In this document: in pieces, positions 1 to 38,509 of the stretch
Position numbering within the stretch: position 1 is the stretch's first letter
Layout of the letters: each line of letters opens with the position of its first letter
Assembly: GCF_001194135.2 (NCBI RefSeq)
Contig: NC_068981.1
Location: 156,178,409-156,220,173, forward strand
DNA from: Octopus bimaculoides
Taxonomy: Eukaryota
Length of the DNA stretch: 41,765 nucleotides
Direction of reading: 5' to 3'
Notes under the pieces: model-generated
What the model saw: only the letters and a program-made list of their open reading frames with translations
Told to the model about the DNA's origin: nothing
Database searches by the model: none
Translations under genes and position numbers: made by a program

Positions 1-507
1 TATTTTATTGTCTTTGCACAGCTTCTAACGCTGGAGATGTACTACGGTGTCAGCTGTTCACTACCAGTGAACTAAGGTAACACCCCTTATTTTCGAGGAC
101 CATCCGGAGTATTCGAACGGTTCCAAGCAGTGCTGTTTTCTGCAAGTGCTCCACCCTTATTGCAGCCCCTATTTGTTCCACGTACTTCTCGAGATTTTTG
201 CTCACTGTTCCCAGGGCTCCGACAATTATTGGTACTACTGCTACCTTTTTCATCGACCACAGCTGCTTAACTTCCCAAGCTAACCCGTCATATCTCTCGA
301 CTTTTCTTTCTTCTTTATCGCATACCTTGTTGTCAGCTGTTCAATACCAGTGGACTAAGGTAACATCCCTTATTTTCGAGCACCATCCGGAGTATTCGAG
401 CGTTTCCAAGCGGTGCTGTTTTCTGTAAGTGCTCCACCCTTATTGCAGCCCCTATTTGCTCCATGTACTTCTCAAAATTTTTAGTTCTCAGGGCTCCGAC
501 AATTATT
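1..507 (-). mobile_element. Two tandem 3' fragments of an RLE-type non-LTR retrotransposon (R4/Dong-like)
   Basis: Minus-strand ...KVERYDGLAWEVKQLWSMKKVAVVPIIVGALGTVSK...LQKTALLGTVRILRMVLE is the restriction-like endonuclease C-terminus. Copies at ~49-230 and ~331-507 abut an (ATT/GTT)n microsatellite. Confidence 0.75.
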
Positions 508-535
508 AATATTATTGTTGTTGTTGTTGTTATTG

Positions 536-575
<40 letters not shown>

Positions 576-2056
576 CATCATCATTAGCAAAATATAAAAT
601 AACCTGCAGCTACAACACTTCAACGTTTGCTACTAAATGAGCTGCTTTTACATTCACCTTTACAGCCACGCTTTTCAGAAGTGCGTTCTCCTGATAAGGA
701 CATGCTTTCTTAGACCCACTGGATTAAGATTAATTCGTGAATTCATTTCACCAGCTTATCTCCCAGTGGCTATTTCTGTATGCGATTAGCGATTAGTTTG
801 ATTAAAAAGAAAAAAGACTTACAACTAACATTGCCAATCACTGGGAATATATATTCGTTAGCGGGAAACACGTTATATTTAGCCAATTAGAAACTAATAG
901 GCTGTGGCATTTTACTCTTATCGTATTAATGCGGATCAAGCTATAGACTATATAAATCGTGCCGAATCGAATTTGCTTCAAATATCCATTACATTTTGGA
1001 GTATTTGTTGGCAAGTGAAAAAGAACAAAAAACATCAATAAGCCAGTAAGTATATTTAACTATTGTAATTCTGGCAGCAAACATTGCATAGCATATACCG
1101 ATACGACAAAACAACGCTCAGTATTTTTACCTTTTACGTTGCTTAAAAATTTGCTCACCTTTTTACAAACATAGCATTTATATATAAACAACATTCGCAA
1201 TTGATACTATATGATAATGACTATTTATTAAATTGTAAACTATTTATCTCACGTAAAATACTGCAAAATCCATGAAGATTTCCGGTCTTTCTCAAAATGG
1301 AAAAAAAATGCATAAAAATCTTTAAATTATTTTAACGGTGAAAAGTAACTTTTGTAAAGATAAAATCTGTTGATGTATCTATTAATGTTAGATGTTGGAT
1401 GTTATATGAATAGTGAATCCCTTATTTCATTAGGCCATAGGAACATCAAAGATCCTCTACGCGATCGTAAGAAATAGTAGCCAGATCACCCCCACAGCAC
1501 ACCTTTCGAACTAAGATTCTTGATGTACGAAACAGGAAGGTCATGGATGGAATGCTTTGCTTATAGGTCTGCTCAGTGAGTGGTGACCCGGAGCTAAACA
1601 GCAACAAGTACAAGAACAACACCCACAGTCTTTCTGGGCTACATTAGCTGCCTGTTAAGGCCCATCCCTCTTCAAGGTACCTTAACAGAGGAGCCGAACT
1701 CTGTACTGCAAGCAAACAAGCCACTTGTCAATTTTATAGTGCTAACATTATTTGAAGCAGTCAGTAGCCCCTAATCTGTGCGACCTATCAACAGCTAGTT
1801 TTGACTGGACCATTTTAAAGTTTTAAAGTGCTTTGACCATGGGCACAACAATGTGCCTTTAATAGGATGCAAACCAGAGGTTTGTCGGTTAGTCATTCTA
1901 TATGTTTATCTATCTGTTCGGCCTTCTCGTCTCACTTTTCGAATGATGACGCTAAAAGAAAAGATGGAAATAAGTAACAAACGTCGTTGTTGTTGTTTAG
2001 CCCTACGATCAATGCTCCATTCCACCTTTTATTCACTGTGTTATCTAGAATTATAT

Positions 2057-2330
2057 GAGGGTGCGTGGCCTAGAGGTCACGATGTTGTACTCACGATCGC
2101 GTGATCGTGGGTTCGATTCCCGAATAGTGCGTTGTGTTTTTGAGCAAAGAACTTCATTATATATTGCTCCGCAATCATTTCGGCATCTGACGTGTGACAC
2201 ACCTATACAGGCAATGTCGATTTGAAGAACAGAGTGAACTTACGTGCAACACTAAAGTTTGATCACTATAAACAAATCATTTGTGTGCAGGTTGTTCAGC
2301 AAGAAATTGCAGAACCATCTTTCTCGTATT
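2057..2330 (+). mobile_element. tRNA-derived SINE (family A)
   Basis: A-box/B-box-like head (gtggcctagagg...gggttcgattccc) plus a body homologous to the reverse complement of 36885-37197. Confidence 0.75.
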
Positions 2331-3363
2331 CGGTTGCCTACCATATCTAGACTTACAATATTCGTTGTAACTATTTTTTCTAAATGTTGAGGATGTGTAT
2401 GGTGGTAGATTTGGCTATTATTTCTGGTAGGTTGAAGAACGTATTTGCAGTTTGTTTGACCCAAGTGAACCTGAAAATCCTTTTAATGGTTCAGCTCTTA
2501 ACTTCTATATATACTTCAAATTAATCTTGTATTCCACGCTGTTTTTTAAAATAATGAACACAGTTGCCTCGAAGAGATTAAAGAAAACTTTTATCTATTG
2601 AACACTATAAATGTTTAATCTAAAGTTATCCTGCATTACTGGGAAAATTTAGTATCAAATATTAAGCTTATTAGTTTCTTGCTGATATTCTGATTAACGA
2701 ATTATCATCGGGGATTAAAAGAAATTTTGCTTGTTAATCTACCAACATTTACTTATATATTTACATATTATGAATGTGTCTGTGTGTATGTGTGTGTGCG
2801 CGCTGTATTTGTATACGTGTAAAGATTTTGGATTATATGCAGATTTTCGACTCTAATCCTAGCATTAATGCTGTATTAGTGAAATTCATATAGAGTGACT
2901 GGCCTGATCGAATTCAAACAACGTGAGCATTGATATTGCATAAAAAGAAAACCTTCGGTACACATTTATGTGGAAGGCTTTATGATGTTTATGTTTTAGT
3001 AATATTAATAAAGTGAAATTGTTATAAACAGATTGCAGAAAAGTTTAGTCATTGATTGCTGGTTTAACACTAGGTTTAACATTAGGTTATTTTGATAGTC
3101 TTTCCTCTATTGAAGACAATTGCGTTGTCTCTGGCCCGAGGATATCTTCCTCCAGCCACTAAGACCCTGAAAAAGGCAATGGGCGCTGCTTTTCCTCCTT
3201 TGAATAAACCATAAAATAACGTTTTAAAAAATATCAGATTGGCATAATTTATGTTTATCTTGCAACTGAAGTGATAAATACGAGGTGTATATGAAGCGTA
3301 ACTGTTCTGACTGGGAATAAAACCAAGCTGTCACTCATAATTATAGCCTTGCACGAAATCCAG

Positions 3364-3512
3364 TGAGTCATTAATCTTAAATGCCAATTAGTCTAATACA
3401 CTTTAGGATAGCAGTCCCTATCCTGTGAACCATAAAAGTAGCATCGACTGAGGTGTGCGAGTTGTGCGGTCACTTATATACGAATGGTTCGTATATAAGT
3501 GACTGTTATAAG
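3364..3512 (+). promoter_or_regulatory. Candidate RALBP promoter and non-coding first exon
   Basis: TGAGTCA at 3364, TAATCT at 3372, CAATTAG at 3385, TATA-like CATAAAAG at 3431, then a strong donor AAG|GTACGT at 3512/3513. The ATG exon has an acceptor, so an upstream exon is required. Confidence 0.35.
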
Positions 3513-4281
3513 GTACGTTATGTTTAAGGAAGAGGACGGCCAGCCCCCATGCTGCGACATTGCATCAGAACCCATATTGGGTCGCAGTAATATTCCGAAA
3601 AGATCAACACAATTTTATTTTTGAAATATTTGGTAAGATCTAAATTGTAAACGAATATATTACACATTAAGTCATAGATGCAAAGGCTGCAACACAATGA
3701 CAGTTACTGTAATAAACAAAAACTAAGGATTATTTCACTAAGAAAAGTATCAAATGCTAATGTACTAAACTTCTGCTAATGTATTAAACTTCTGAAATCA
3801 CAGAATTGATCGGAGACATATGTTGAAAGCGAGACAATCACAACGTGGAAAAGCCATTTCCGCGATTTATGATACAAAAGTTATTAAATTTTCTGTCAAT
3901 TTATTTCTTAGAATATTAATGGTGTTATAAAAGAGACCTACTCGCAATTCTGCACCGAAGTCTGACACCTTAAGAAATAATTTTACGATGAATTTAATAG
4001 TTGTTTTAATGCTACTAATTGTAATTAATGTAATATAATTAACAAACTTGTCCTCTTCTTCACTATATTATTTTCCTGGAAGTTGCGGCGCATTGAAGTT
4101 AAAAGAGCTTGTCTTTGTTTGAGGGTTGAATGACTACTATTGCTATTGGGTACCATAACAATCTTTATAGATTTTGCAGTGGAATTATTTGAATTCATTA
4201 ATGTCAAACAACGAAGTAATTTTACTTCGAATAATAAACGACACCTAGTTTACAACCAGGTGGACTGAGCCTACGCAAGTT

Positions 4282-4356
<75 letters not shown>

Positions 4357-4388
4357 CAGTTGCTGCTGCTGCCGCTGCCGCCGCCGCT
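4282..4388. repeat. Compound microsatellite (AGT)n-(GCT/GCC)n
   Basis: Read directly from the sequence. Confidence 0.95.
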
Positions 4389-5028
4389 GTTTAGCCTCAG
4401 GTCAGCTCTGATTAAGTTGATCTATTGAAGGCATTCTATAGCACGTTATGTAAGGGGCGTTTGGTTGCTACTTCTAGCAGATAGAGTGATCATTCTATTG
4501 TGACTCTCAAAGCTGCATCTTCTATTCATTGCAGTTTTAAACTATTAAGGCGCAGCTACCTAATGTTAACATATTTACTGAAGTGAGCATAAGATATATT
4601 AAGAATAAGATACGAGTTCAATCAATTTATATTCTTTTAATGATTTCGGAAAATACGGGAGACAGAACTGAACATATTTCGTTCTTAGCATCTTCAGGGA
4701 AGCATATACTTTACCATATCTGTCGAAGTAGTGATGAGGGAATCACTAAGTAGATAAAGCCTAATTGGTGTCAAAGAAATTAACATATCTACACAGATTT
4801 ATCACCGAGAGAAGTTATTCGAAGACGTTATTTGCCTCTTTTATTTGTTGTTTATTTCAGTCATTGGACGGCGGCCAAGTTAGGGCACCACTTTGAAGGG
4901 TTTTAATCGACCATATTGACCCCAGTACCTATTCCTGTAACTCTGGTCCTTATTCTAGCGTGTATAACAAAACTAATCAAATGTAATTACGCAGTGAAGT
5001 AAAGAAAACATTGTGTAATGTCTGTTAG

Positions 5029-5069
<41 letters not shown>

Positions 5070-5334
5070 CATACATGTATGTATATATTGCAATAATGTA
5101 CTATAGAACATATCTAGAGATTTTTGTCTGACACTATATGATACAACGAATGTAACCTTTACGTCCATATATATGCAATATGTTCGCTGTGAGAAAAAAT
5201 AGTTGTATACGTCGCTCATTTCAACCCTACTTGAGTAGCCATGCAACTTACTGGACTGTCCACGAGCACGCTCCCTATCAACCCACTGATATTAGTGGCT
5301 CATGTAAACTGAATTTGCATATTTAACACGCAAT

Positions 5335-5362
5335 TACACACACACACACACACACACACACT

Positions 5363-5434
<72 letters not shown>
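5335..5434. repeat. (CA)n followed by (GATA)n microsatellite
   Basis: Read directly from the sequence. Confidence 0.95.
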
Positions 5435-5435
<1 letters not shown>

Positions 5436-7882
5436 TTTTCACACCTACTCTTGTGTACCTCCTTAGATATTATCTTATCACTGCTTCGGCAAGTAAAGTT
5501 TATTATGTGACATGAGGATGTTTAATAAGACTGAATCAAAATTTGAATTATCTCCCGTTTTTGCCGAAATAATGAAAACAATATTTGTCACCGTACTAAT
5601 ATTGTCTTTTCCTCTTTTCATAATTATTTTCAATTAGCTTTTTTGATATTAACTGCATTAAATACGATAACATTAACTGGACTGTTGCTTTTTAAGTTGA
5701 TGGGATTTCTAAATACTTTCTGTCTGTGATTTATTCGTTACTGGGACCTACACTGGTCACATTGCTCGAACGTATATCTGCGTCTTTGGGCAGGTAACTT
5801 GACATAATTTTGTAAACAGAAAAACAGAAAAAAATAATGTCCACCACAGAGGTGTCTTATAATATATTCATCCTGTCATACAAGCTTTGGTGAAGCTCGA
5901 CCTATTAGAAATAGATCCCAAATATACATCAAATTACTCCCTGTGGTCTTACAAAAAGACTCTGAAAATAATATAGACCGGTATACGTTATATTTAAAAA
6001 TAGAAAGAGGTAGTATGATTATGACTGAACTGTTTTTTTAACACAGATCTGCTTGATCAGGCCGACAGGGCACTAACAACAACTAGAATCAAATTATAAG
6101 ACTAAAATGAGGTTAAATAAGTAGAAAACAGAAAAGTATTACCCAGCTATGGGAAAATGCAGCTCGCAGGAATTTCTAAACGGCAGATCTAACGAAAAAT
6201 TTCCTTGAAATCTTTTTAGCAACACTGCTCACCTGACGATGAGTCGAGTCTCATACGACCTGTTTTTCAAAAAGGTTGATATAACCTATAATCGTCGACA
6301 TAAGTGTCTTTCTGAAAAAAAAAATCCCAATTTTTTTCTTTTCCTTCTTTCATTTTTTTTTTCTTTTTTTTTTCCCATTTGCTTTTACAAATTTGCTGCT
6401 AATGAGATTCATTTAAGTTTAACAGTAACATGAGGCTACCAAATTCCTCTTACATAAATGAACTTCAATAGCTACTCCAGTGCTCTTCAATGTTGATGTC
6501 CAACTGGCAGATGATGAGAGAAGATCCCTACTTATGTTAAATATGTTTCCATTTTTCACGTTCAGGTCTCTGATCGCTGTTACTGTCCTGTAGAATTTGT
6601 TTTATTTAAAGAGAATAGTACAGGGTCTTAGGTTATGTGGTTTCTTGATAGAATTTGTCATAAGGGTTAGATGTAAATTTTGTAGAAATATACTGTTTTG
6701 TAATAATTATTGCTTAATGAGTTCGTAAATCCTTTATAAGATGGATATGCACACACACACAGACACACCTACAATCATACCCACACACAGCACAATAATT
6801 AACTTTCTTCACCATTTCTTTAATTGTTTTTCGTGTTTCGGTAGTGTCTTAGCTCTAATTTCAACATTTCAATCGTCTTCCAAGGCTGTGTCTAATCAAA
6901 GTAACTCGAGATTCCAACAACAATTAACTATCTTAAAAGCTCAGGGGAGACCTACAATCGGAAACTACTCCCAAATCTGGGGCGATATAGCTGCTTCATA
7001 TACAAGCATACGAGCCCACATCCCACAAAAATCGGCCACCTAACTAAGTAGTATGTAGTCGCCAGCCAACACGCTTCCAACCTTTTCTCCTGCAGTCGCC
7101 AACATTTACAGCATCGATTGGAGGGCTTATGAAGGCCTTGAACACCATGAAGGCCATGTTTGGAGGGCTTGTGAAGGCTATTCACACAAACCTTCCTCCA
7201 GATATAAATCCGATTGCGGTTTCTAGTTCAGGCCACTCCAGTCATGTTAACAGTGACTTAGTAAAAGCATAAACGCCACACAATTCCAGTTCTTCTACCT
7301 TATAAATCTGAGGCATATATACCAATGTAAGAATTCGACAATTGTATTGTATGCAATATGTATTAACCGCGTGGGTAGAAGCATGGTCAAGGAGTTTAAA
7401 AATTTGACTAGTGACTATTATAACGTATGTCATAAATATTTTATACTCAACCACTTATACTATCATTGAATGGGTAGAAATTTAGTTGATAGGGCAAATG
7501 GTGTATTCATTGTAGAACCCGTCGATGGACCATTTATTTTATTTTTATTGTATATTATTCTGTAAACATTTGACAGACCCGTAGTGCTATGAATGTGTCA
7601 CTGTACACTGAGATCTTATCTGAATGAAATCTGGCATATTCTTTTTATATCACAAAACTCGGACGGGATTGTGAAAAATACTGCCTGATTCCCATGCATT
7701 AGTACCCCAACTTCATTTCCAGAATGCTGAAGATAAGATAATACTATTTAATGGATCCCGATCACAAATTTCAATCAATTGCCTTACTGGTGTTACTTGT
7801 GGGGAAAATATCGCTTCCTTCGCTTGCACTGAATCTATTTTGATTGAGTGCAATATTTAATCATAACCATACTATTATACAA

Positions 7883-8087
7883 GTGACGATCGGTGGCTTA
7901 GTGGTTATCGTAAGATTGTATTTTTGATTCCTGGAATGCACAATGGGTTGTGTTCTTGGGCAAAACACTTCATTTCCCGTTGCTCTAGTTCACCCAGCTG
8001 ACAAAAATACGTAATCCTGCGACAAACCGGCGTCCCGACCAGAGGAGAACACACGCTTCACAGAAACTGGAAAACCGGCTCTATGAG
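7883..8087 (+). mobile_element. tRNA-derived SINE, family-A-like head
   Basis: gtggcttagtggtt...ttgtgttcttgggcaaaacacttcatttc...ttgctctagttcacccagctg matches the head and core of 37237-37380. Confidence 0.65.
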
Positions 8088-8220
8088 TATATATATCTCA
8101 TGAAGGAACTTTATCCTTTTTTACGCTATTATTTAAGAGTTATATAAAGTATTGAGATCTGAAGGAAATAGGGATTTTTAAAAAACTAAATGTGATTCTT
8201 TACCTTGTTATTTTCAGAAT

Positions 8221-8280
8221 ATGAGTCTCAGAGAACAGCATGGCGCTGAAAAACTCATTGACGAGTACACCCCACCAGAG
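8221..8280 (+). CDS. RALBP: RALBP coding exon 1 (MSLREQHGAEKLIDEYTPPE)
   Basis: Acceptor ttattttcag ends at 8217, followed by AAT and ATG at 8221. Donor GAG|gtaaga at 8281. TPPE aligns with the SEC14L 'QPPE' motif. Confidence 0.88.
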
Positions 8281-8353
8281 GTAAGAGTGTTTAAATATTT
8301 AAATATCAAAGGCTAGTTGTTGTGGATAAGATCACATTGATATGATTCTGTGT

Positions 8354-12071: not shown

Positions 12072-12260
12072 GTCATCCAGAAATACATGACTGGGGGAGA
12101 TATTGGACACGATAAAGAAGGTGCAGTCGTCCGAATTGAGCCATGGGGCTACTTAGATATGAAAGGAATCATGTATTCATGCAAAAAATCAGATTTGGAA
12201 AAGAGCAAGCTGCTTCAGTGTGAAAAACATCTAAAAGACCTGGAAGGTGAAACTGAAAAG
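12072..12260 (+). CDS. RALBP: RALBP coding exon 2 ([17 protein letters not shown]...DLEGETEK), start of CRAL-TRIO
   Basis: ttttatag|GTC acceptor, 189 nt open frame, AAG|gtagaa donor. Carries the SEC14-type GxDKEG motif. Confidence 0.95.
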
Positions 12261-13941: not shown

Positions 13942-14017
13942 CTTGGGAAACCCTGCGCTGGACTGACTGTTGTGTTCGATATGCAGAATGTAGGATCTAA
14001 ACACATGTGGAAACCAG
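13942..14017 (+). CDS. RALBP: RALBP coding exon 3 ([26 protein letters not shown])
   Basis: tttttgcag|CTT acceptor, 76 nt, CAG|gtaagt donor. Carries the CRAL-TRIO VFDM...KHxWKP motif. Confidence 0.95.
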
Positions 14018-15229: not shown

Positions 15230-15310
15230 GTTTGGACATGTACTTATATTTAGTCAAAGTGTTGGAAGACAATTATCCTGATATGATGAAAAGACTCTTT
15301 GTCATCAATG
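15230..15310 (+). CDS. RALBP: RALBP coding exon 4 ([26 protein letters not shown])
   Basis: tacttacag| acceptor, 81 nt, ATG|gtaagg donor. Carries the EDNYP..KRLFVIN CRAL-TRIO motif. Confidence 0.95.
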
Positions 15311-17467: not shown

Positions 17468-17551
17468 CCCCAACACTATTTCCCGTCTTATATAAACTCG
17501 TGAAACCGCTTCTCAGTGAAGACATGAAGAACAAGATTTTTGTATTGGGAA
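17468..17551 (+). CDS. RALBP: RALBP coding exon 5 ([28 protein letters not shown])
   Basis: cttttcag| acceptor, 84 nt, GAA|gtaagt donor. Matches the SEC14 gating-helix region AP..F...KP.LSE...KI. Confidence 0.96.
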
Positions 17552-18743: not shown

Positions 18744-18850
18744 ATGACTTTAAAGACACACTGCTGGAATATATTGAAGCGGAGAACCTTCCTGCTTATT
18801 TGGGTGGTACAAAGACCGGTCCTGATGGAGATCCCAAATGTTTAGATGTG
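18744..18850 (+). CDS. RALBP: RALBP coding exon 6 ([36 protein letters not shown])
   Basis: ggttttcag| acceptor, 107 nt, GTG|gtaagt donor. Carries the LP..LGGT...PDGDPKC motif. Confidence 0.96.
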
Positions 18851-19465
18851 GTAAGTAGAAACTGCTGTTTCCATATATATAAAGCTAATTCAGGCTCCTC
18901 CTCAGAAATCTGTTTGTGACATTCCTAAAAGTTATGATTGTATTTCTATCTACAAACATTTGGCAAGTAGATTTTCATTTTCTTCATCTGCAAAAGTATT
19001 CCATATCGAACTGATGACAGCATTGATTGCTATCACATTATAGTTTTAACAATATTTTCACCGTTTTCACAAGGTAAGTCACCTCGCTCATATGAAGTTT
19101 AAGACGTTTGGAGTGGTCTTAAGAGGGCCCAGAAATGAAATGAAATGAGAGACGTGAGATTTGCAGAATCGGTACTACTTGTGCCGCTCACAAAGTTTTT
19201 CTAAAAGAACATAAATTTTAGCGTTTCCTTCATAATTTTCATATACCAAAACTAGCATACCCGTGTCGTCAAAAATGCCGACAGCTTTTATTAATGATAG
19301 AAAATGGCGCATCAATACAATGGTAAAACCATTGCTAAATGTAAGCAAACTAATAAATATATGAAGTACTTGAATTAGATACGGTTGAACTGTCACAGCT
19401 GAAAATATCGTGTATATGATGTATGTGTGTATGTGTGTGTGTATACACACACGCAGACATACATA

Positions 19466-19508
<43 letters not shown>

Positions 19509-19578
19509 TCACATACGCACGCACACGCACGTACACGCGCGCGCGCGCACATATGCATTTAGGTCTCCACGAAGTATG

Positions 19579-19622
<44 letters not shown>

Positions 19623-20355
19623 GCGACTCCAGGTCATCAGTGTCACTCGGGCTCATCACAGATTTCGCAAAAGACACATGCCTGCTCGAAGAATTTCACG
19701 TTTTTCCGCTTTATTCCTAGCCCCAAATGGCTTATTTTTTATATCTAGCATTATGTCTTTTTCGATTTCTAAGTTGAGGGTAAAAATAAAGCAACACTGC
19801 AAAACACAACTGGTCTTTACACAGAGACACACAGAATAACAGCACTCAAATAACGACAGCGGAGTGCACAACAAACATCACCGATCTGACTGTTGCATGT
19901 ACTCTTGACAAAAGATGCCAGTTAGTCTTTTACACCTACCAGGCTCGTTCGTATAAGCCCATGATACTGGATAATGTTTCGCTCCTTTAAGAATATTGTA
20001 GAATGGAAACTTTTCATAGATTGGAATTTAAATCCTAATCTTTATAGAAATTTATTATTTTAAGAAAACATTGAATATGAATTACTTTTAATTTTTACGA
20101 TTATACGTAGATAACAACTCGGGCTGTAACTTCTGAGCCCGAGTCAGGTGCGTGTGAACGATATCGCGAGAACGTCTGCTACGAATATTTTTTGACACAG
20201 GGCACCTCTAAGACGACCGCCAGATGCTGAACGACAATAAATGCGACCAGGCTCAGTAAGAAGTGCCCGGGTTATTGGCTGAAATTACATACTTGAAGTC
20301 AGTGTTGTCAGAAATTAAATCAGCTTGAAAATATACGTTCAGTTTACTAAATTCA

Positions 20356-20476
20356 NNNNNNNNNNNNNNNNNNNNNNNNNNNNNNNNNNNNNNNNNNNNN
20401 NNNNNNNNNNNNNNNNNNNNNNNNNNNNNNNNNNNNNNNNNNNNNNNNNNNNNNNNNNNNNNNNNNNNNNNNNNNN
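20356..20476. other. Assembly gap (121 N). Other gaps at 33635-33713 (79 N) and 38295-38304 (10 N).
   Basis: N runs in the sequence. The first lies in the intron between coding exons 6 and 7, which join in frame without it. Confidence 1.
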
Positions 20477-20512
<36 letters not shown>

Positions 20513-20520
20513 TTACATGT

Positions 20521-20555
<35 letters not shown>

Positions 20556-20636
20556 CCTCTCTACACATAGACGCACACATACACACCTACTTACCTACAA
20601 ATAGGTAGGTAGGTGTGTGTGAGCGTGTGCATAAAA

Positions 20637-20938
20637 CCATTTATCCTCTTTTCGAGGCAGTAATGGGTAAGGACCCCCTTCGGTCATGACTGACCATGGG
20701 ATTGCACCTAGAAAGTTACCCTCCGCGGCACAAGTCCAGGCAAGGTTGTTTATGGAAGACCAGCAAGGGAACGGGAAAGACCGATACAGCTTTGCACCAG
20801 TGATGTCGCAACACATTTCTACAGCTGAATGAACTGGAACAACGTGAAATAAAGTGTCTTGTTGAGGACAACACACAGCCCGGTCCACGAATCGGACTCA
20901 CTACCTCATGCGCCCAACGCTCTAACCACTGAGCCCTC
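20637..20938 (-). mobile_element. tRNA-derived SINE, family-A-like head with another tail
   Basis: Minus strand reads ctcagtggttagagcgttgg...gtcctcaacaagacactttatttcacgttgttccagttcattcagctg, the same core as family A. Confidence 0.7.
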
Positions 20939-21254
20939 AAAGCATTCTGGAATGAACGTATCAAAACAAACCAGAGGTATAACTTGTTCCGTATGTATAT
21001 AGTGTGATTAAATGGTATGATCTACTGTTGACAGAGAATACAGAACCACCGATATACAACAAAAAGCTCGGTTATTGGTATAATGATGCTACCGATGCAT
21101 CTTTTCAATAACCAGTACACTTCGTTCTCGATTGTTCAGTCCAGTATTAGCAAGTTACTGATGCATCATTAGCTGTCTTCATATTTTCAATCTATTTTTG
21201 GATCAATGGTCTAATATGGTTTACTATATGTTTTGCTTGTTTTTGTATTTTCAG

Positions 21255-21394
21255 ATTTGCCATGGTGGTGAAGTACCTAAAGAATTCTATTTGGAAAATA
21301 CCGAAGACTTCGAAACTATGGAAACCATTACTGTTGGAAGTGGTGATAAGATTTACATTGAATATGAAATCGAAAAGGAAGACAGTTTCCTTAA
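21255..21394 (+). CDS. RALBP: RALBP coding exon 7 ([14 protein letters not shown]...EKEDSFLK), linker and start of GOLD
   Basis: gtattttcag| acceptor, 140 nt, TAA|gtaagt donor. Carries the GGEVPK.FY motif. Confidence 0.95.
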
Positions 21395-24877: not shown

Positions 24878-25026
24878 ATGGGAATACAAAACTGAAGAAC
24901 ACGATATCGGATTTGGAGTTTTTAGAAAGAATGGTGACGACTGGGAAGAGGTTGTGCCTATTCAGAGAACTGACTGTTCCATCATGACTCTTGATGGCAG
25001 CTACAAATGCAAAGATCCCGGAACAT
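24878..25026 (+). CDS. RALBP: RALBP coding exon 8 ([17 protein letters not shown]...KCKDPGT), GOLD domain
   Basis: ttctttag| acceptor, 149 nt, CAT|gtaagt donor. Carries the GOLD motifs W.F.T...DIGFG and DG...C..PG. Confidence 0.95.
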
Positions 25027-29298: not shown

Positions 29299-29456
29299 AT
29301 GCCCTGTGCTTCGACAATTCTTTTAGTATGATGACTTCAAAGAATGTCCGTTATACTGCAGAAGTTATGAATCCTGAAATTGATGTTTTGAAAGAAGATC
29401 TTGATAAAATGATCAAAGACAGCACTTGGGATGAACTTTCTGCTCAAATCAATTAG
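29299..29456 (+). CDS. RALBP: RALBP coding exon 9 ([23 protein letters not shown]...SAQIN*)
   Basis: tttatttgcag| acceptor, GOLD motif Y.L.FDN.FS...K.V.Y, TAG stop at 29454-29456. Confidence 0.95.
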
Positions 29457-33518: not shown

Positions 33519-34059
33519 CTTTCATTGTTCCTCTGTGTGGAATGGTCTTGTACCTCCACCTCTTGAGCACTCCCAACTCTCTTTTATCTCTTTCTGCTGT
33601 CACCCATATTGCGTCCACGTACCCCAGGCTCTGCNNNNNNNNNNNNNNNNNNNNNNNNNNNNNNNNNNNNNNNNNNNNNNNNNNNNNNNNNNNNNNNNNN
33701 NNNNNNNNNNNNNCTGCTAACGTAGAACGAAAAAGGTATCAATTTGAAGAAGAATCTGCAAAGACCATAGACACAGCTCCTTCTTCCGTCTGAAATCTTT
33801 AAAATAAGTAAGTAAATAAATAAATAAATAAATAAATAAAATCTAATTGAAAGAGTCGAAGAAATTACAAAAATGAGATGGCAGTTTTAGTATGAGAAAA
33901 GATATATATTTTTTGCAAGTATCGTTAGAGCATCGATATTTTTTCCAGATCTTTACGTCCTGAGTTCAAATCCTGCCGGAGTCAATTTTGCCTTTCAACA
34001 TTGTGGAATCGATAGGACAAAGTGTGATGCCAGTCAATAAAGTGCTGGGATTGAAATTT

Positions 34060-38198: not shown

Positions 38199-38509
38199 CT
38201 TCTCTCTCTCTCTCGCACTCTCTTTCTCTCTTCCTCGCTCTCCCTTTCTCTCTCTCTCTGGTTCACTCTTTCAGGGCGGTGGTTGATGTAAAAGNNNNNN
38301 NNNNCAGCAGTTTTTGATCAGATATATAGATATATGCTTCATTATAACAGTGATATTCACAAAGCTTTTACCTTCATAAAGGAACTTTTTTCAGCACGGT
38401 GCATATGTCATAGCATTACAATTGTATAGTAGTGAAACATTGGTAGTGAAACTAAAATACATTATGTTTATATATATTTTCAGTTACCTCAGTTTCAGTT
38501 ACCATCGTG

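Follow-up and report, generated by a model that had tools for sequence, protein, structure and literature searches.

Octopus RALBP as a headless SEC14L-type protein: probable use of a once-internal methionine in an ancient fourth exon

Does the retinal-binding protein (RALBP) of octopus begin at a methionine that once lay inside a longer SEC14L-type protein, and if so, is this how the cephalopod retinal shuttle came about? The question is raised by a stretch of 41,765 nucleotides from Octopus bimaculoides (contig NC_068981.1, positions 156,178,409 to 156,220,173, forward strand), located on chromosome CM046601.1 and referred to here as the window; coordinates below are those of the window unless another contig is named. 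Squid RALBP is a soluble protein that carries retinal, in both the 11-cis and the all-trans form, between rhodopsin and retinochrome (PMC8628405, PMC7910522). It is the carrier on which the cephalopod rhodopsin-retinochrome cycle works, and the characterised protein is of the SEC14L type without the N-terminal helical domain. A first-pass annotation of the window proposed that RALBP is a SEC14L gene that lost its N-terminal exons and recycled an internal Met as its start. Our best explanation, which we consider probable, is that the old fourth exon of Octopus RALBP is reached from one or more non-coding leaders and that translation starts at the once-internal Met, giving a headless protein of 347 amino acids; this shortening is not the origin of RALBP. 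The gene and its product are already known and annotated, and the split between long and short forms described here is a modest new point.

The RALBP exons were first located with a SEC14L2-like probe, and their boundaries were then set from splice sites. The model has nine coding exons within 8218-29456, all with AG/GT borders, and reading from the ATG at 8221 gives a 347-residue protein identical to XP_014769203.1, retinal-binding protein isoform X1 of O. bimaculoides (exact-sequence look-up). The features of the model are as follows; L001 is a spliced RNA contig from a cephalopod relative that is described below.

8198-8217, plus strand: polypyrimidine tract and AG acceptor before the first coding exon of the short form (sequence; conserved in O. 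vulgaris, Argonauta hians and contig L009)
8218-8280, plus strand: 63-nt exon, phase 0 at both ends, encoding N-MSLREQHGAEKLIDEYTPPE; orthologue of SEC14L2/RALBP coding exon 4 (tblastn, exon mapping)
8221-8223, plus strand: ATG, start codon of XP_014769203.1, ancestrally codon 2 of exon 4 (identity to the RefSeq model)
8281-8286, plus strand: GT donor GTAAGA of the same exon (sequence)
12072-12260, plus strand: coding exon 2 of the short form (VIQKYMTGG...ETEK), start of CRAL_TRIO (splice sites, mRNA L001 across the exon)
13942-14017, plus strand: coding exon 3 (splice sites, mRNA L001)
15230-15310, plus strand: coding exon 4 of the short form (splice sites, mRNA L001)
17468-17551, plus strand: coding exon 5 (splice sites, mRNA L001)
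18744-18850, plus strand: coding exon 6, end of CRAL_TRIO (splice sites, Pfam, mRNA L001)
21255-21394, plus strand: coding exon 7, start of GOLD (splice sites, Pfam, mRNA L001)
24878-25026, plus strand: coding exon 8, GOLD (splice sites, Pfam, mRNA L001)
29299-29456, plus strand: last coding exon with the stop codon (splice sites)

Pfam analysis of the 347-residue product revealed CRAL_TRIO (PF00650, expectation value (E) 1.2e-29, residues 32-185) and GOLD_2 (PF13897, E 3.9e-11), and returned no match to CRAL_TRIO_N (PF03765) at E up to 1. From residue 4 to residue 322 the product is colinear with residues 63-387 of human SEC14L2 (E 1e-81). The CRAL_TRIO domain, which builds the ligand pocket of Sec14-fold proteins, is present in full in the Octopus product. 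AlphaFold2 modeled the short protein with a mean predicted local distance difference test (pLDDT) score of 90.5 and a predicted template modeling score of 0.83, with a lower pLDDT of 79 for the first ten residues.

The exon at 8218-8280, henceforth exon 4 by its ancestral number, has the features of an internal coding exon. Its acceptor is strong (CTTTACCTTGTTATTTTCAG, AG at 8216-8217), with pyrimidines at 15 of the 18 bases before the AG, and the tract ranks second among the nine acceptors of the gene. The acceptor is followed by AAT (8218-8220), the ATG (8221-8223), then AGT CTC and on to CCA GAG at the exon end, 8280; the 63 nt encode NMSLREQHGAEKLIDEYTPPE in phase 0 at both ends, and the donor GTAAGA begins at 8281. 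The sequence therefore confirms, as written, the earlier description of an ATG placed 3 nt past the acceptor at 8217, with an in-frame, phase-0 AAT in between. O. vulgaris, Argonauta hians and a third cephalopod contig (L009) all keep the acceptor and the A[AG]T ATG AGT that follows, and the A at -3 of the ATG is the first base of a conserved Ser/Asn codon (AGY/AAT). Comparison of the exon with N-terminal segments of relatives by tblastn gave E values of 4e-7 to 2e-5, a similarity that we read as homology, with chance ruled out. Two annotated isoforms vary around this model (entries P0126 / P0124). O. bimaculoides isoform X2 (322 amino acids) has its start, MTGGD, in the exon after exon 4, which suggests transcripts that skip exon 4, and O. 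sinensis isoform X1 (305 amino acids) has an alternative 3' end after ...KCKDPGH.

To place exon 4 within the SEC14L family, the fish SEC14L2 of Scomber (L014), the RALBP-like gene of the chiton Liolophura (L015) and an Argonauta RALBP paralogue of the type B defined below (L010) were each mapped onto their genomic locus. The coding exons of Scomber SEC14L2 read MSGRVG..TE, FRGR..WLR, ARSF..IRK, HVEFRKQMKVDSIISDFKPPE and VIERY..., with HVEFRK..PPE as exon 4, and those of the Liolophura gene read ...IKQ, FREK..WLK, ARDF..FRN, SMAYRENMKVDTLVQNYKPPE and VLTKY..., with SMAYRE..PPE as exon 4. The Argonauta paralogue has the same layout, its fourth coding exon being SKSFRERLQVDQLLENYVPPE (SKSFRE..PPE). 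In all three genes exon 4 is 63 nt long, in phase 0/0, and preceded by three coding exons that encode the CRAL_TRIO_N region. The Pfam CRAL_TRIO_N match in long relatives stops one residue before exon 4, at the exon 3/4 junction, and alignment of cephalopod with SEC14L2 N-termini by hhalign gave a probability of 99.4%. These aligned gene structures identify 8218-8280 as an ancient exon, the fourth coding exon of a gene of the SEC14L type with the order CRAL_TRIO_N, CRAL_TRIO and GOLD. The first-pass annotation had put forward both the match to vertebrate SEC14L exon 4 and the coding of CRAL_TRIO_N by the three exons ahead of it, and both statements are borne out by the fish and mollusc genes. 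The Met at the Octopus start position is internal in long relatives, which agrees with the annotation. Met is found there in 47 of 115 aligned homologues, the others having mostly Val, Leu or Ile, and the fish and amphibian SEC14L2 sequences aligned have Val.

A full-length orthologue of the Octopus protein exists in cuttlefish-type decapodiforms. The closest homologue returned (P0003, 86% identical) is represented by spliced RNA contigs from at least 24 assemblies. One of these contigs, L001, could be mapped to every one of the nine window exons; the window has no counterpart of its initial 604 nt. Its full reading frame encodes 426 amino acids (MYRQTYSMIEGK...EEWWGY..TPEKE..YCKRWLIARQFNVDQAVEMFKN/SMSLREK..., the slash marking the exon 3/4 junction). 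It should be noted that P0003 (419 amino acids; loci L001-L006) was called from the second Met, the true open reading frame (ORF) being the one of 426 codons that starts MYRQTYS. The 426-residue form is also found in the cuttlefish Acanthosepion pharaonis, in a gene model and an RNA contig (CAE1324635.1; P0133); the other decapodiform is entered as P0132. In both decapodiforms the N-terminal exons join exon 4 in frame (MYRQTYS...YCKRWLIARQ[FY]NVDQAVEMFKN/SMSLRE), and both mRNAs carry in-frame stops upstream of MYRQTYS. The ratio of nonsynonymous to synonymous substitution rates between the two is 0.03 for the 78 N-terminal codons versus 0.07 for the remaining protein, and by this measure the decapodiform N-terminal domain is under strong purifying selection. 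AlphaFold2 predicted the N-terminal residues of the long form to be helical with pLDDT above 90, and placed the old internal Met within a helix (residues 62-79) that crosses the exon 3/4 junction.

A neighbor-joining tree resolved the relationships among these proteins. The long decapodiform proteins are orthologues (type A) of the Octopus and Todarodes proteins, 85-91% identical, and type A is sister to a faster-evolving coleoid type B; Nautilus falls outside both, among other mollusc RALBPs. RALBP-like proteins of chitons, gastropods, bivalves and brachiopods are about 400-430 amino acids long and have the N-terminal region. Since long forms persist in decapodiforms and in other molluscs, the N-terminal exons were present in the coleoid type-A ancestor. 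The view of RALBP as a headless SEC14L starting at a once-internal Met consequently stands for the Octopus and Todarodes proteins and fails as an account of the origin of the gene, for which long orthologues exist. The earlier proposal that the cephalopod shuttle arose by loss of N-terminal exons is contradicted by the full-length decapodiform mRNAs and non-cephalopod RALBPs; splicing of in-frame CRAL_TRIO_N exons onto exon 4, which had been named as evidence against it, was found in close relatives and not in Octopus. As a side observation, the first 11 residues of the type-A (P0132/P0133) and type-B (P0008/P0010) N-termini are near-identical (MYRQTYS[ML]IEG), and the rest of these N-termini are only about 55% identical by eye. 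A constraint could account for the shared residues, acting either at the extreme N-terminus or at the mRNA 5' end.

The short form is likewise represented by mRNAs, in this case of oegopsid-type squid. Two contigs, L007 from a Joint Genome Institute (JGI) metatranscriptome and L017 from a Logan assembly, have a leader joined to AG[CT] ATG AGT CTC CGA GA.... The two leaders are mutually homologous, free of ATG and distinguished by an 8-nt indel, and that of L017 contains an in-frame TAA. The squid leader is evidently spliced on, because genomic contig L009 has a pyrimidine tract and AG, not the leader, ahead of AGT ATG AGT. Contig L007 begins with ACATGGGG, which we take to be the tail of a SMART template-switch oligo; if so, the start of L007 is the 5' end of the cDNA. 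The 27 additional N-terminal residues of the corresponding protein entry (P0004, loci L007/L008; MGTSV...) were set aside as very probably an artefact, their ATG lying within ACATGGGG at the contig 5' end. Local and global alignments of the squid leader with Octopus and Argonauta upstream DNA were no better than those of shuffled sequences (fraction at least as good, 0.14-0.85), and homology between squid and octopod leaders is not established on such comparisons. All long and short type-A forms seen here come from different species.

In O. vulgaris a further leader is joined to the same acceptor. Entry CAI9716272.1 (P0125) has a non-homologous segment, MSVLALIST...LKAQ, ahead of NMSLREQ, and its counterparts in the window are these:

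6107-6113, plus strand: ATGAG/GT, counterpart of the 5-nt first coding piece of O. vulgaris P0125 (inferred)
6845-6944, plus strand: counterpart of the O. vulgaris leader exon (SVLALIST..LKAQ), with the acceptor ..tttcggtag intact and GG at the donor position 6945-6946 (candidate only)

The donor of this leader is CAG/GTGAGA in O. vulgaris (contig L013, 10903-10904) versus CAG/GGGAGA in O. bimaculoides. The leader may therefore not be spliced alike in O. bimaculoides, or the base may reflect an assembly error or a polymorphism. The leader ORF was considered as a conserved N-terminal extension and rejected, given the GG at the O. bimaculoides donor, the lack of a detectable counterpart in Argonauta upstream DNA and the lack of a Pfam domain. 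Separately, the RALBP of Nautilus pompilius (P0007, A0A977R1C5) has 45 initial residues that are unrelated to CRAL_TRIO_N and join at the exon-4 junction (...GNHGDL/SMDYREK), and Nautilus may also use an alternative leader exon, one with an in-frame upstream ATG.

We then looked for N-terminal exons upstream of octopod type-A genes. Using ten N-termini as queries, tblastn found no CRAL_TRIO_N exon in window positions 1-8217, and no N-terminal exon or remnant in the 10 kb upstream of type A in O. bimaculoides and Argonauta or in 11.9 kb upstream in O. vulgaris. A profile hidden Markov model built from thirteen N-termini gave a best match of E 2.5, on the wrong strand, in octopod type-A upstream DNA. 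With this profile, every control exon was recovered in fish, chiton and the Argonauta paralogue, at E values from 9e-9 to 0.1, and the three N-terminal exons of the Argonauta paralogue are all at most 6.2 kb from exon 4. The first-pass observation that 1-8217 holds no CRAL_TRIO_N-like exon is supported by both methods. Database annotation from three different sources likewise holds no long octopod type-A protein (RefSeq models of O. bimaculoides and O. sinensis, a record of O. vulgaris and one of Argonauta). In word-indexed searches, the first 83 residues matched nothing beyond two genomic ORF fragments, and the 78-residue type-A N-terminus nothing beyond one cuttlefish-like exon fragment (P0139). 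The N-terminal profile found no octopod type-A N-terminus among 1.84 billion representative proteins, a result that is uninformative since the library is clustered at 50% identity; a type-B octopod fragment was the sole cephalopod among the six top-ranked hits whose sequences were examined in that search.

Based on these findings, our current hypothesis is that the Octopus mRNA most likely reaches exon 4 from one or more non-coding leader exons, in place of the three N-terminal coding exons of the ancestral gene. Translation would then begin at the AUG at 8221, the first in such an mRNA and ancestrally an internal Met codon, and would yield a 347-residue protein that has the whole CRAL_TRIO ligand pocket and GOLD and is without the N-terminal helical CRAL_TRIO_N region. 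The truncation would amount to a switch of promoter or leader exon onto an old acceptor, specific to some lineages or isoforms. It did not create RALBP, because the orthologue in cuttlefish and the other decapodiform has 426 residues and non-cephalopod RALBPs are full length. On this hypothesis Octopus transcripts would never carry the N-terminal exons, and the short protein would presumably be the functional retinal shuttle in Octopus.

A candidate location for the leader and its promoter is a block of conserved sequence near the start of the window:

574-1072, plus strand: octopod-conserved block, candidate promoter and ATG-free leader exon at about 979-1045 (conservation, motifs)

This block of 499 nt is 96% identical to O. 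vulgaris and 76% to Argonauta, and is colinear and single copy in the loci examined. It contains GGATTA at 721, GATTAG at 784 and 791, CAATTA at 884 and TATATAAA at 949-956. A conserved GTAAGT (1046-1051) lies about 90 nt after TATATAAA, with no ATG in between. In its arrangement the block resembles a promoter with a non-coding first exon behind it, on the same strand as RALBP, and the placement of the Octopus leader exon and promoter here is accordingly a prediction. A weaker colinear block, 69% identical to Argonauta, is found at 2572-2769.

Several points weigh against our hypothesis. Octopods and oegopsids have short forms, and long forms are found inside Decapodiformes; because of this distribution, pure loss would need at least two independent events. 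The pattern favors an ancestral gene with two promoters, more economical than repeated loss, in which Octopus might keep a long isoform. The cuttlefish type-A gene model spans 203 kb, and as our search covered 10-12 kb, the Octopus N-terminal exons could be far upstream. The RNA contig collection contains no long Octopus form, a negative of little weight since it contains no Octopus contigs of RALBP at all. Native squid RALBP is reportedly about 51 kDa, nearer to the 49.2 kDa predicted for the long form than to the 39.2 kDa of the short form, a figure that was not confirmed in the literature searched. That literature yielded nothing relevant on the mass of native RALBP, on a missing N-terminal domain or on the long/short split.

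One alternative is a two-promoter Octopus gene, in which a distal promoter and three N-terminal coding exons are situated at a distance of more than 12 kb upstream of exon 4, the 347-residue protein is the proximal isoform and the ATG at 8221 is both internal codon and start. The idea draws on the presence of both long and short type-A mRNAs within Decapodiformes, on the length of the cuttlefish gene and on the non-homologous N-terminus of the Nautilus record, which suggests an old alternative leader at the same junction. Predicted short isoforms that start five residues upstream, in exon 3, also recur in vertebrates and gastropods. However, the 10-12 kb searched in each of three octopods contained no N-terminal exon, when the paralogue keeps its own within 6.2 kb, and the annotations examined hold no long octopod type-A protein. 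We regard this arrangement in Octopus as rather unlikely. In its general form the idea deserves a tentative place. An ancient gene may have had a distal promoter for the full protein and an internal, possibly photoreceptor-specific one (candidate 574-1072) for the headless squid and octopus shuttle, with different lineages keeping different forms; the full SEC14L-like protein is the only form in the cuttlefish-type RNA assemblies examined. If two promoters exist, the visual shuttle would be defined by removal of the CRAL_TRIO_N helices and not by a new gene. Apart from the contrast between long and short forms, the case is an ordinary one of an annotated gene whose product is shortened at the N-terminus through use of a different first exon.

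Two further explanations dispute the reading of the start itself. Exon 4 could be a first exon, transcribed from a TATA-like TTATATAAAG at 8141-8150, in which case the acceptor would be a chance pyrimidine run and AG in the 5' untranslated region. A TATAAA-like motif does lie about 75 nt upstream of the ATG, where O. vulgaris shares it, and Argonauta has GTATAAAA about 55 nt upstream of the acceptor. Such motifs are common in the AT-rich introns of this gene, however, and the tract and AG are conserved at the homologous phase-0 junction in all genomes examined. This junction serves as an acceptor in the long decapodiform mRNAs, the short squid mRNAs and the O. vulgaris model, and the start of O. 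bimaculoides isoform X2 in the next exon suggests upstream leaders able to skip exon 4. Together these observations make a first exon at this position highly improbable. We find it harder still to credit that the protein is long everywhere and that the short entries of Octopus, Argonauta and Todarodes are 5'-incomplete annotations or clones that default to the first Met. The long form is indeed well supported in cuttlefish-type species, and the reported mass of about 51 kDa for native squid RALBP also speaks for this view, but two independent squid mRNAs carry a distinct non-coding leader, one with an in-frame stop and one with an apparent template-switch tag, and the O. vulgaris model likewise splices a non-homologous leader onto the acceptor. 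The preferred reading remains that of exon 4 as an old internal exon, probably reached in Octopus from a non-coding leader.

The Octopus protein can be compared with several known systems. Its nearest characterised counterpart is Todarodes pacificus RALBP (P49193, 343 amino acids), which is 86.9% identical over the shared length, belongs to the same clade and the same protein cluster, starts MSLREQMGADTL... at the same Met and has CRAL_TRIO and GOLD without CRAL_TRIO_N. Todarodes is an oegopsid squid whereas Octopus is an octopod; retinal binding is known from the squid protein and would be a prediction for that of Octopus, and the squid leader exon has no detectable similarity in Octopus upstream DNA. 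The same start is used in O. sinensis (XP_029643236.1) and Argonauta hians (GAB1597786.1), both of 347 amino acids (MSLREQHG...) and without a CRAL_TRIO_N match. Vertebrate SEC14-like 2/3/4 proteins (TAP/SPF; PDB 1OLM, 4UYB, 4TLG) have CRAL_TRIO and GOLD in common with the Octopus product, and SEC14L2 also has the intron position, the phase and the 63-nt exon 4 in common with the Octopus gene. In contrast to the Octopus product, they carry about 60 N-terminal residues (CRAL_TRIO_N, three coding exons), and the aligned fish and amphibian SEC14L2 differ at the start position as noted above. The full-length cuttlefish-type protein is an orthologue, 86-89% identical, with the same exon 4 and Met, and differs by 78 extra N-terminal residues (MYRQTYS...EMFKN).

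Coleoid type B (Argonauta hians, 412 amino acids; O. sinensis, partial; Acanthosepion, 401 amino acids) forms the sister clade and is 57-62% identical. In Argonauta the six coding exon junctions that were mapped first in the gene are at homologous positions, with three N-terminal exons and then exon 4, and every type-B sequence seen keeps the N-terminal exons, unlike Octopus type A. The truncation point is an old exon boundary, and with natural long and short forms of one orthologue a comparison can be made of how each binds retinal, docks to membranes and exchanges with rhodopsin and retinochrome. A practical corollary is that residue numbering and domain statements taken from the 343-residue squid entry are not valid for every cephalopod.

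Some minor observations accompany these results. Short predicted forms starting M[LIF]R.. inside exon 3, five residues before exon 4, occur among vertebrate SEC14L2 models (P0079, P0081, P0093, P0104), and models that start in exon 3 are also found in gastropods (P0016, P0026, P0055). N-terminally shortened models thus recur across the SEC14L/RALBP family, as real isoforms or truncated predictions. The Argonauta hians type-B locus (L010, 23780-30870 and 31590-34760) contains tandem exon fragments inside introns, with PSYLGGTKTDPDGDPYCHTM present more than 40 times and TVVVKSGDTTMLDLPVHFAGSILQ about 15 times; these are either an artefact of assembly or a satellite whose units contain exons. Scanning the window for Rfam families and tRNAs gave no matches. 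Runs of N mark assembly gaps at 20356-20476, 33635-33713 and 38295-38304, the first of which lies within the intron 18850-21255 and touches no exon. Finally, two adjacent copies of an ORF fragment (...VVPIIVGALGTV..LEKY.EQIGAAIRVEHLQKTA.LG..RILRMVLE...) lie on the minus strand at 53-340 and 336-629 with an (ATT/ATC)n run between them, and this pair (53-629) resembles the tail of a retroelement ORF, a putative assignment.

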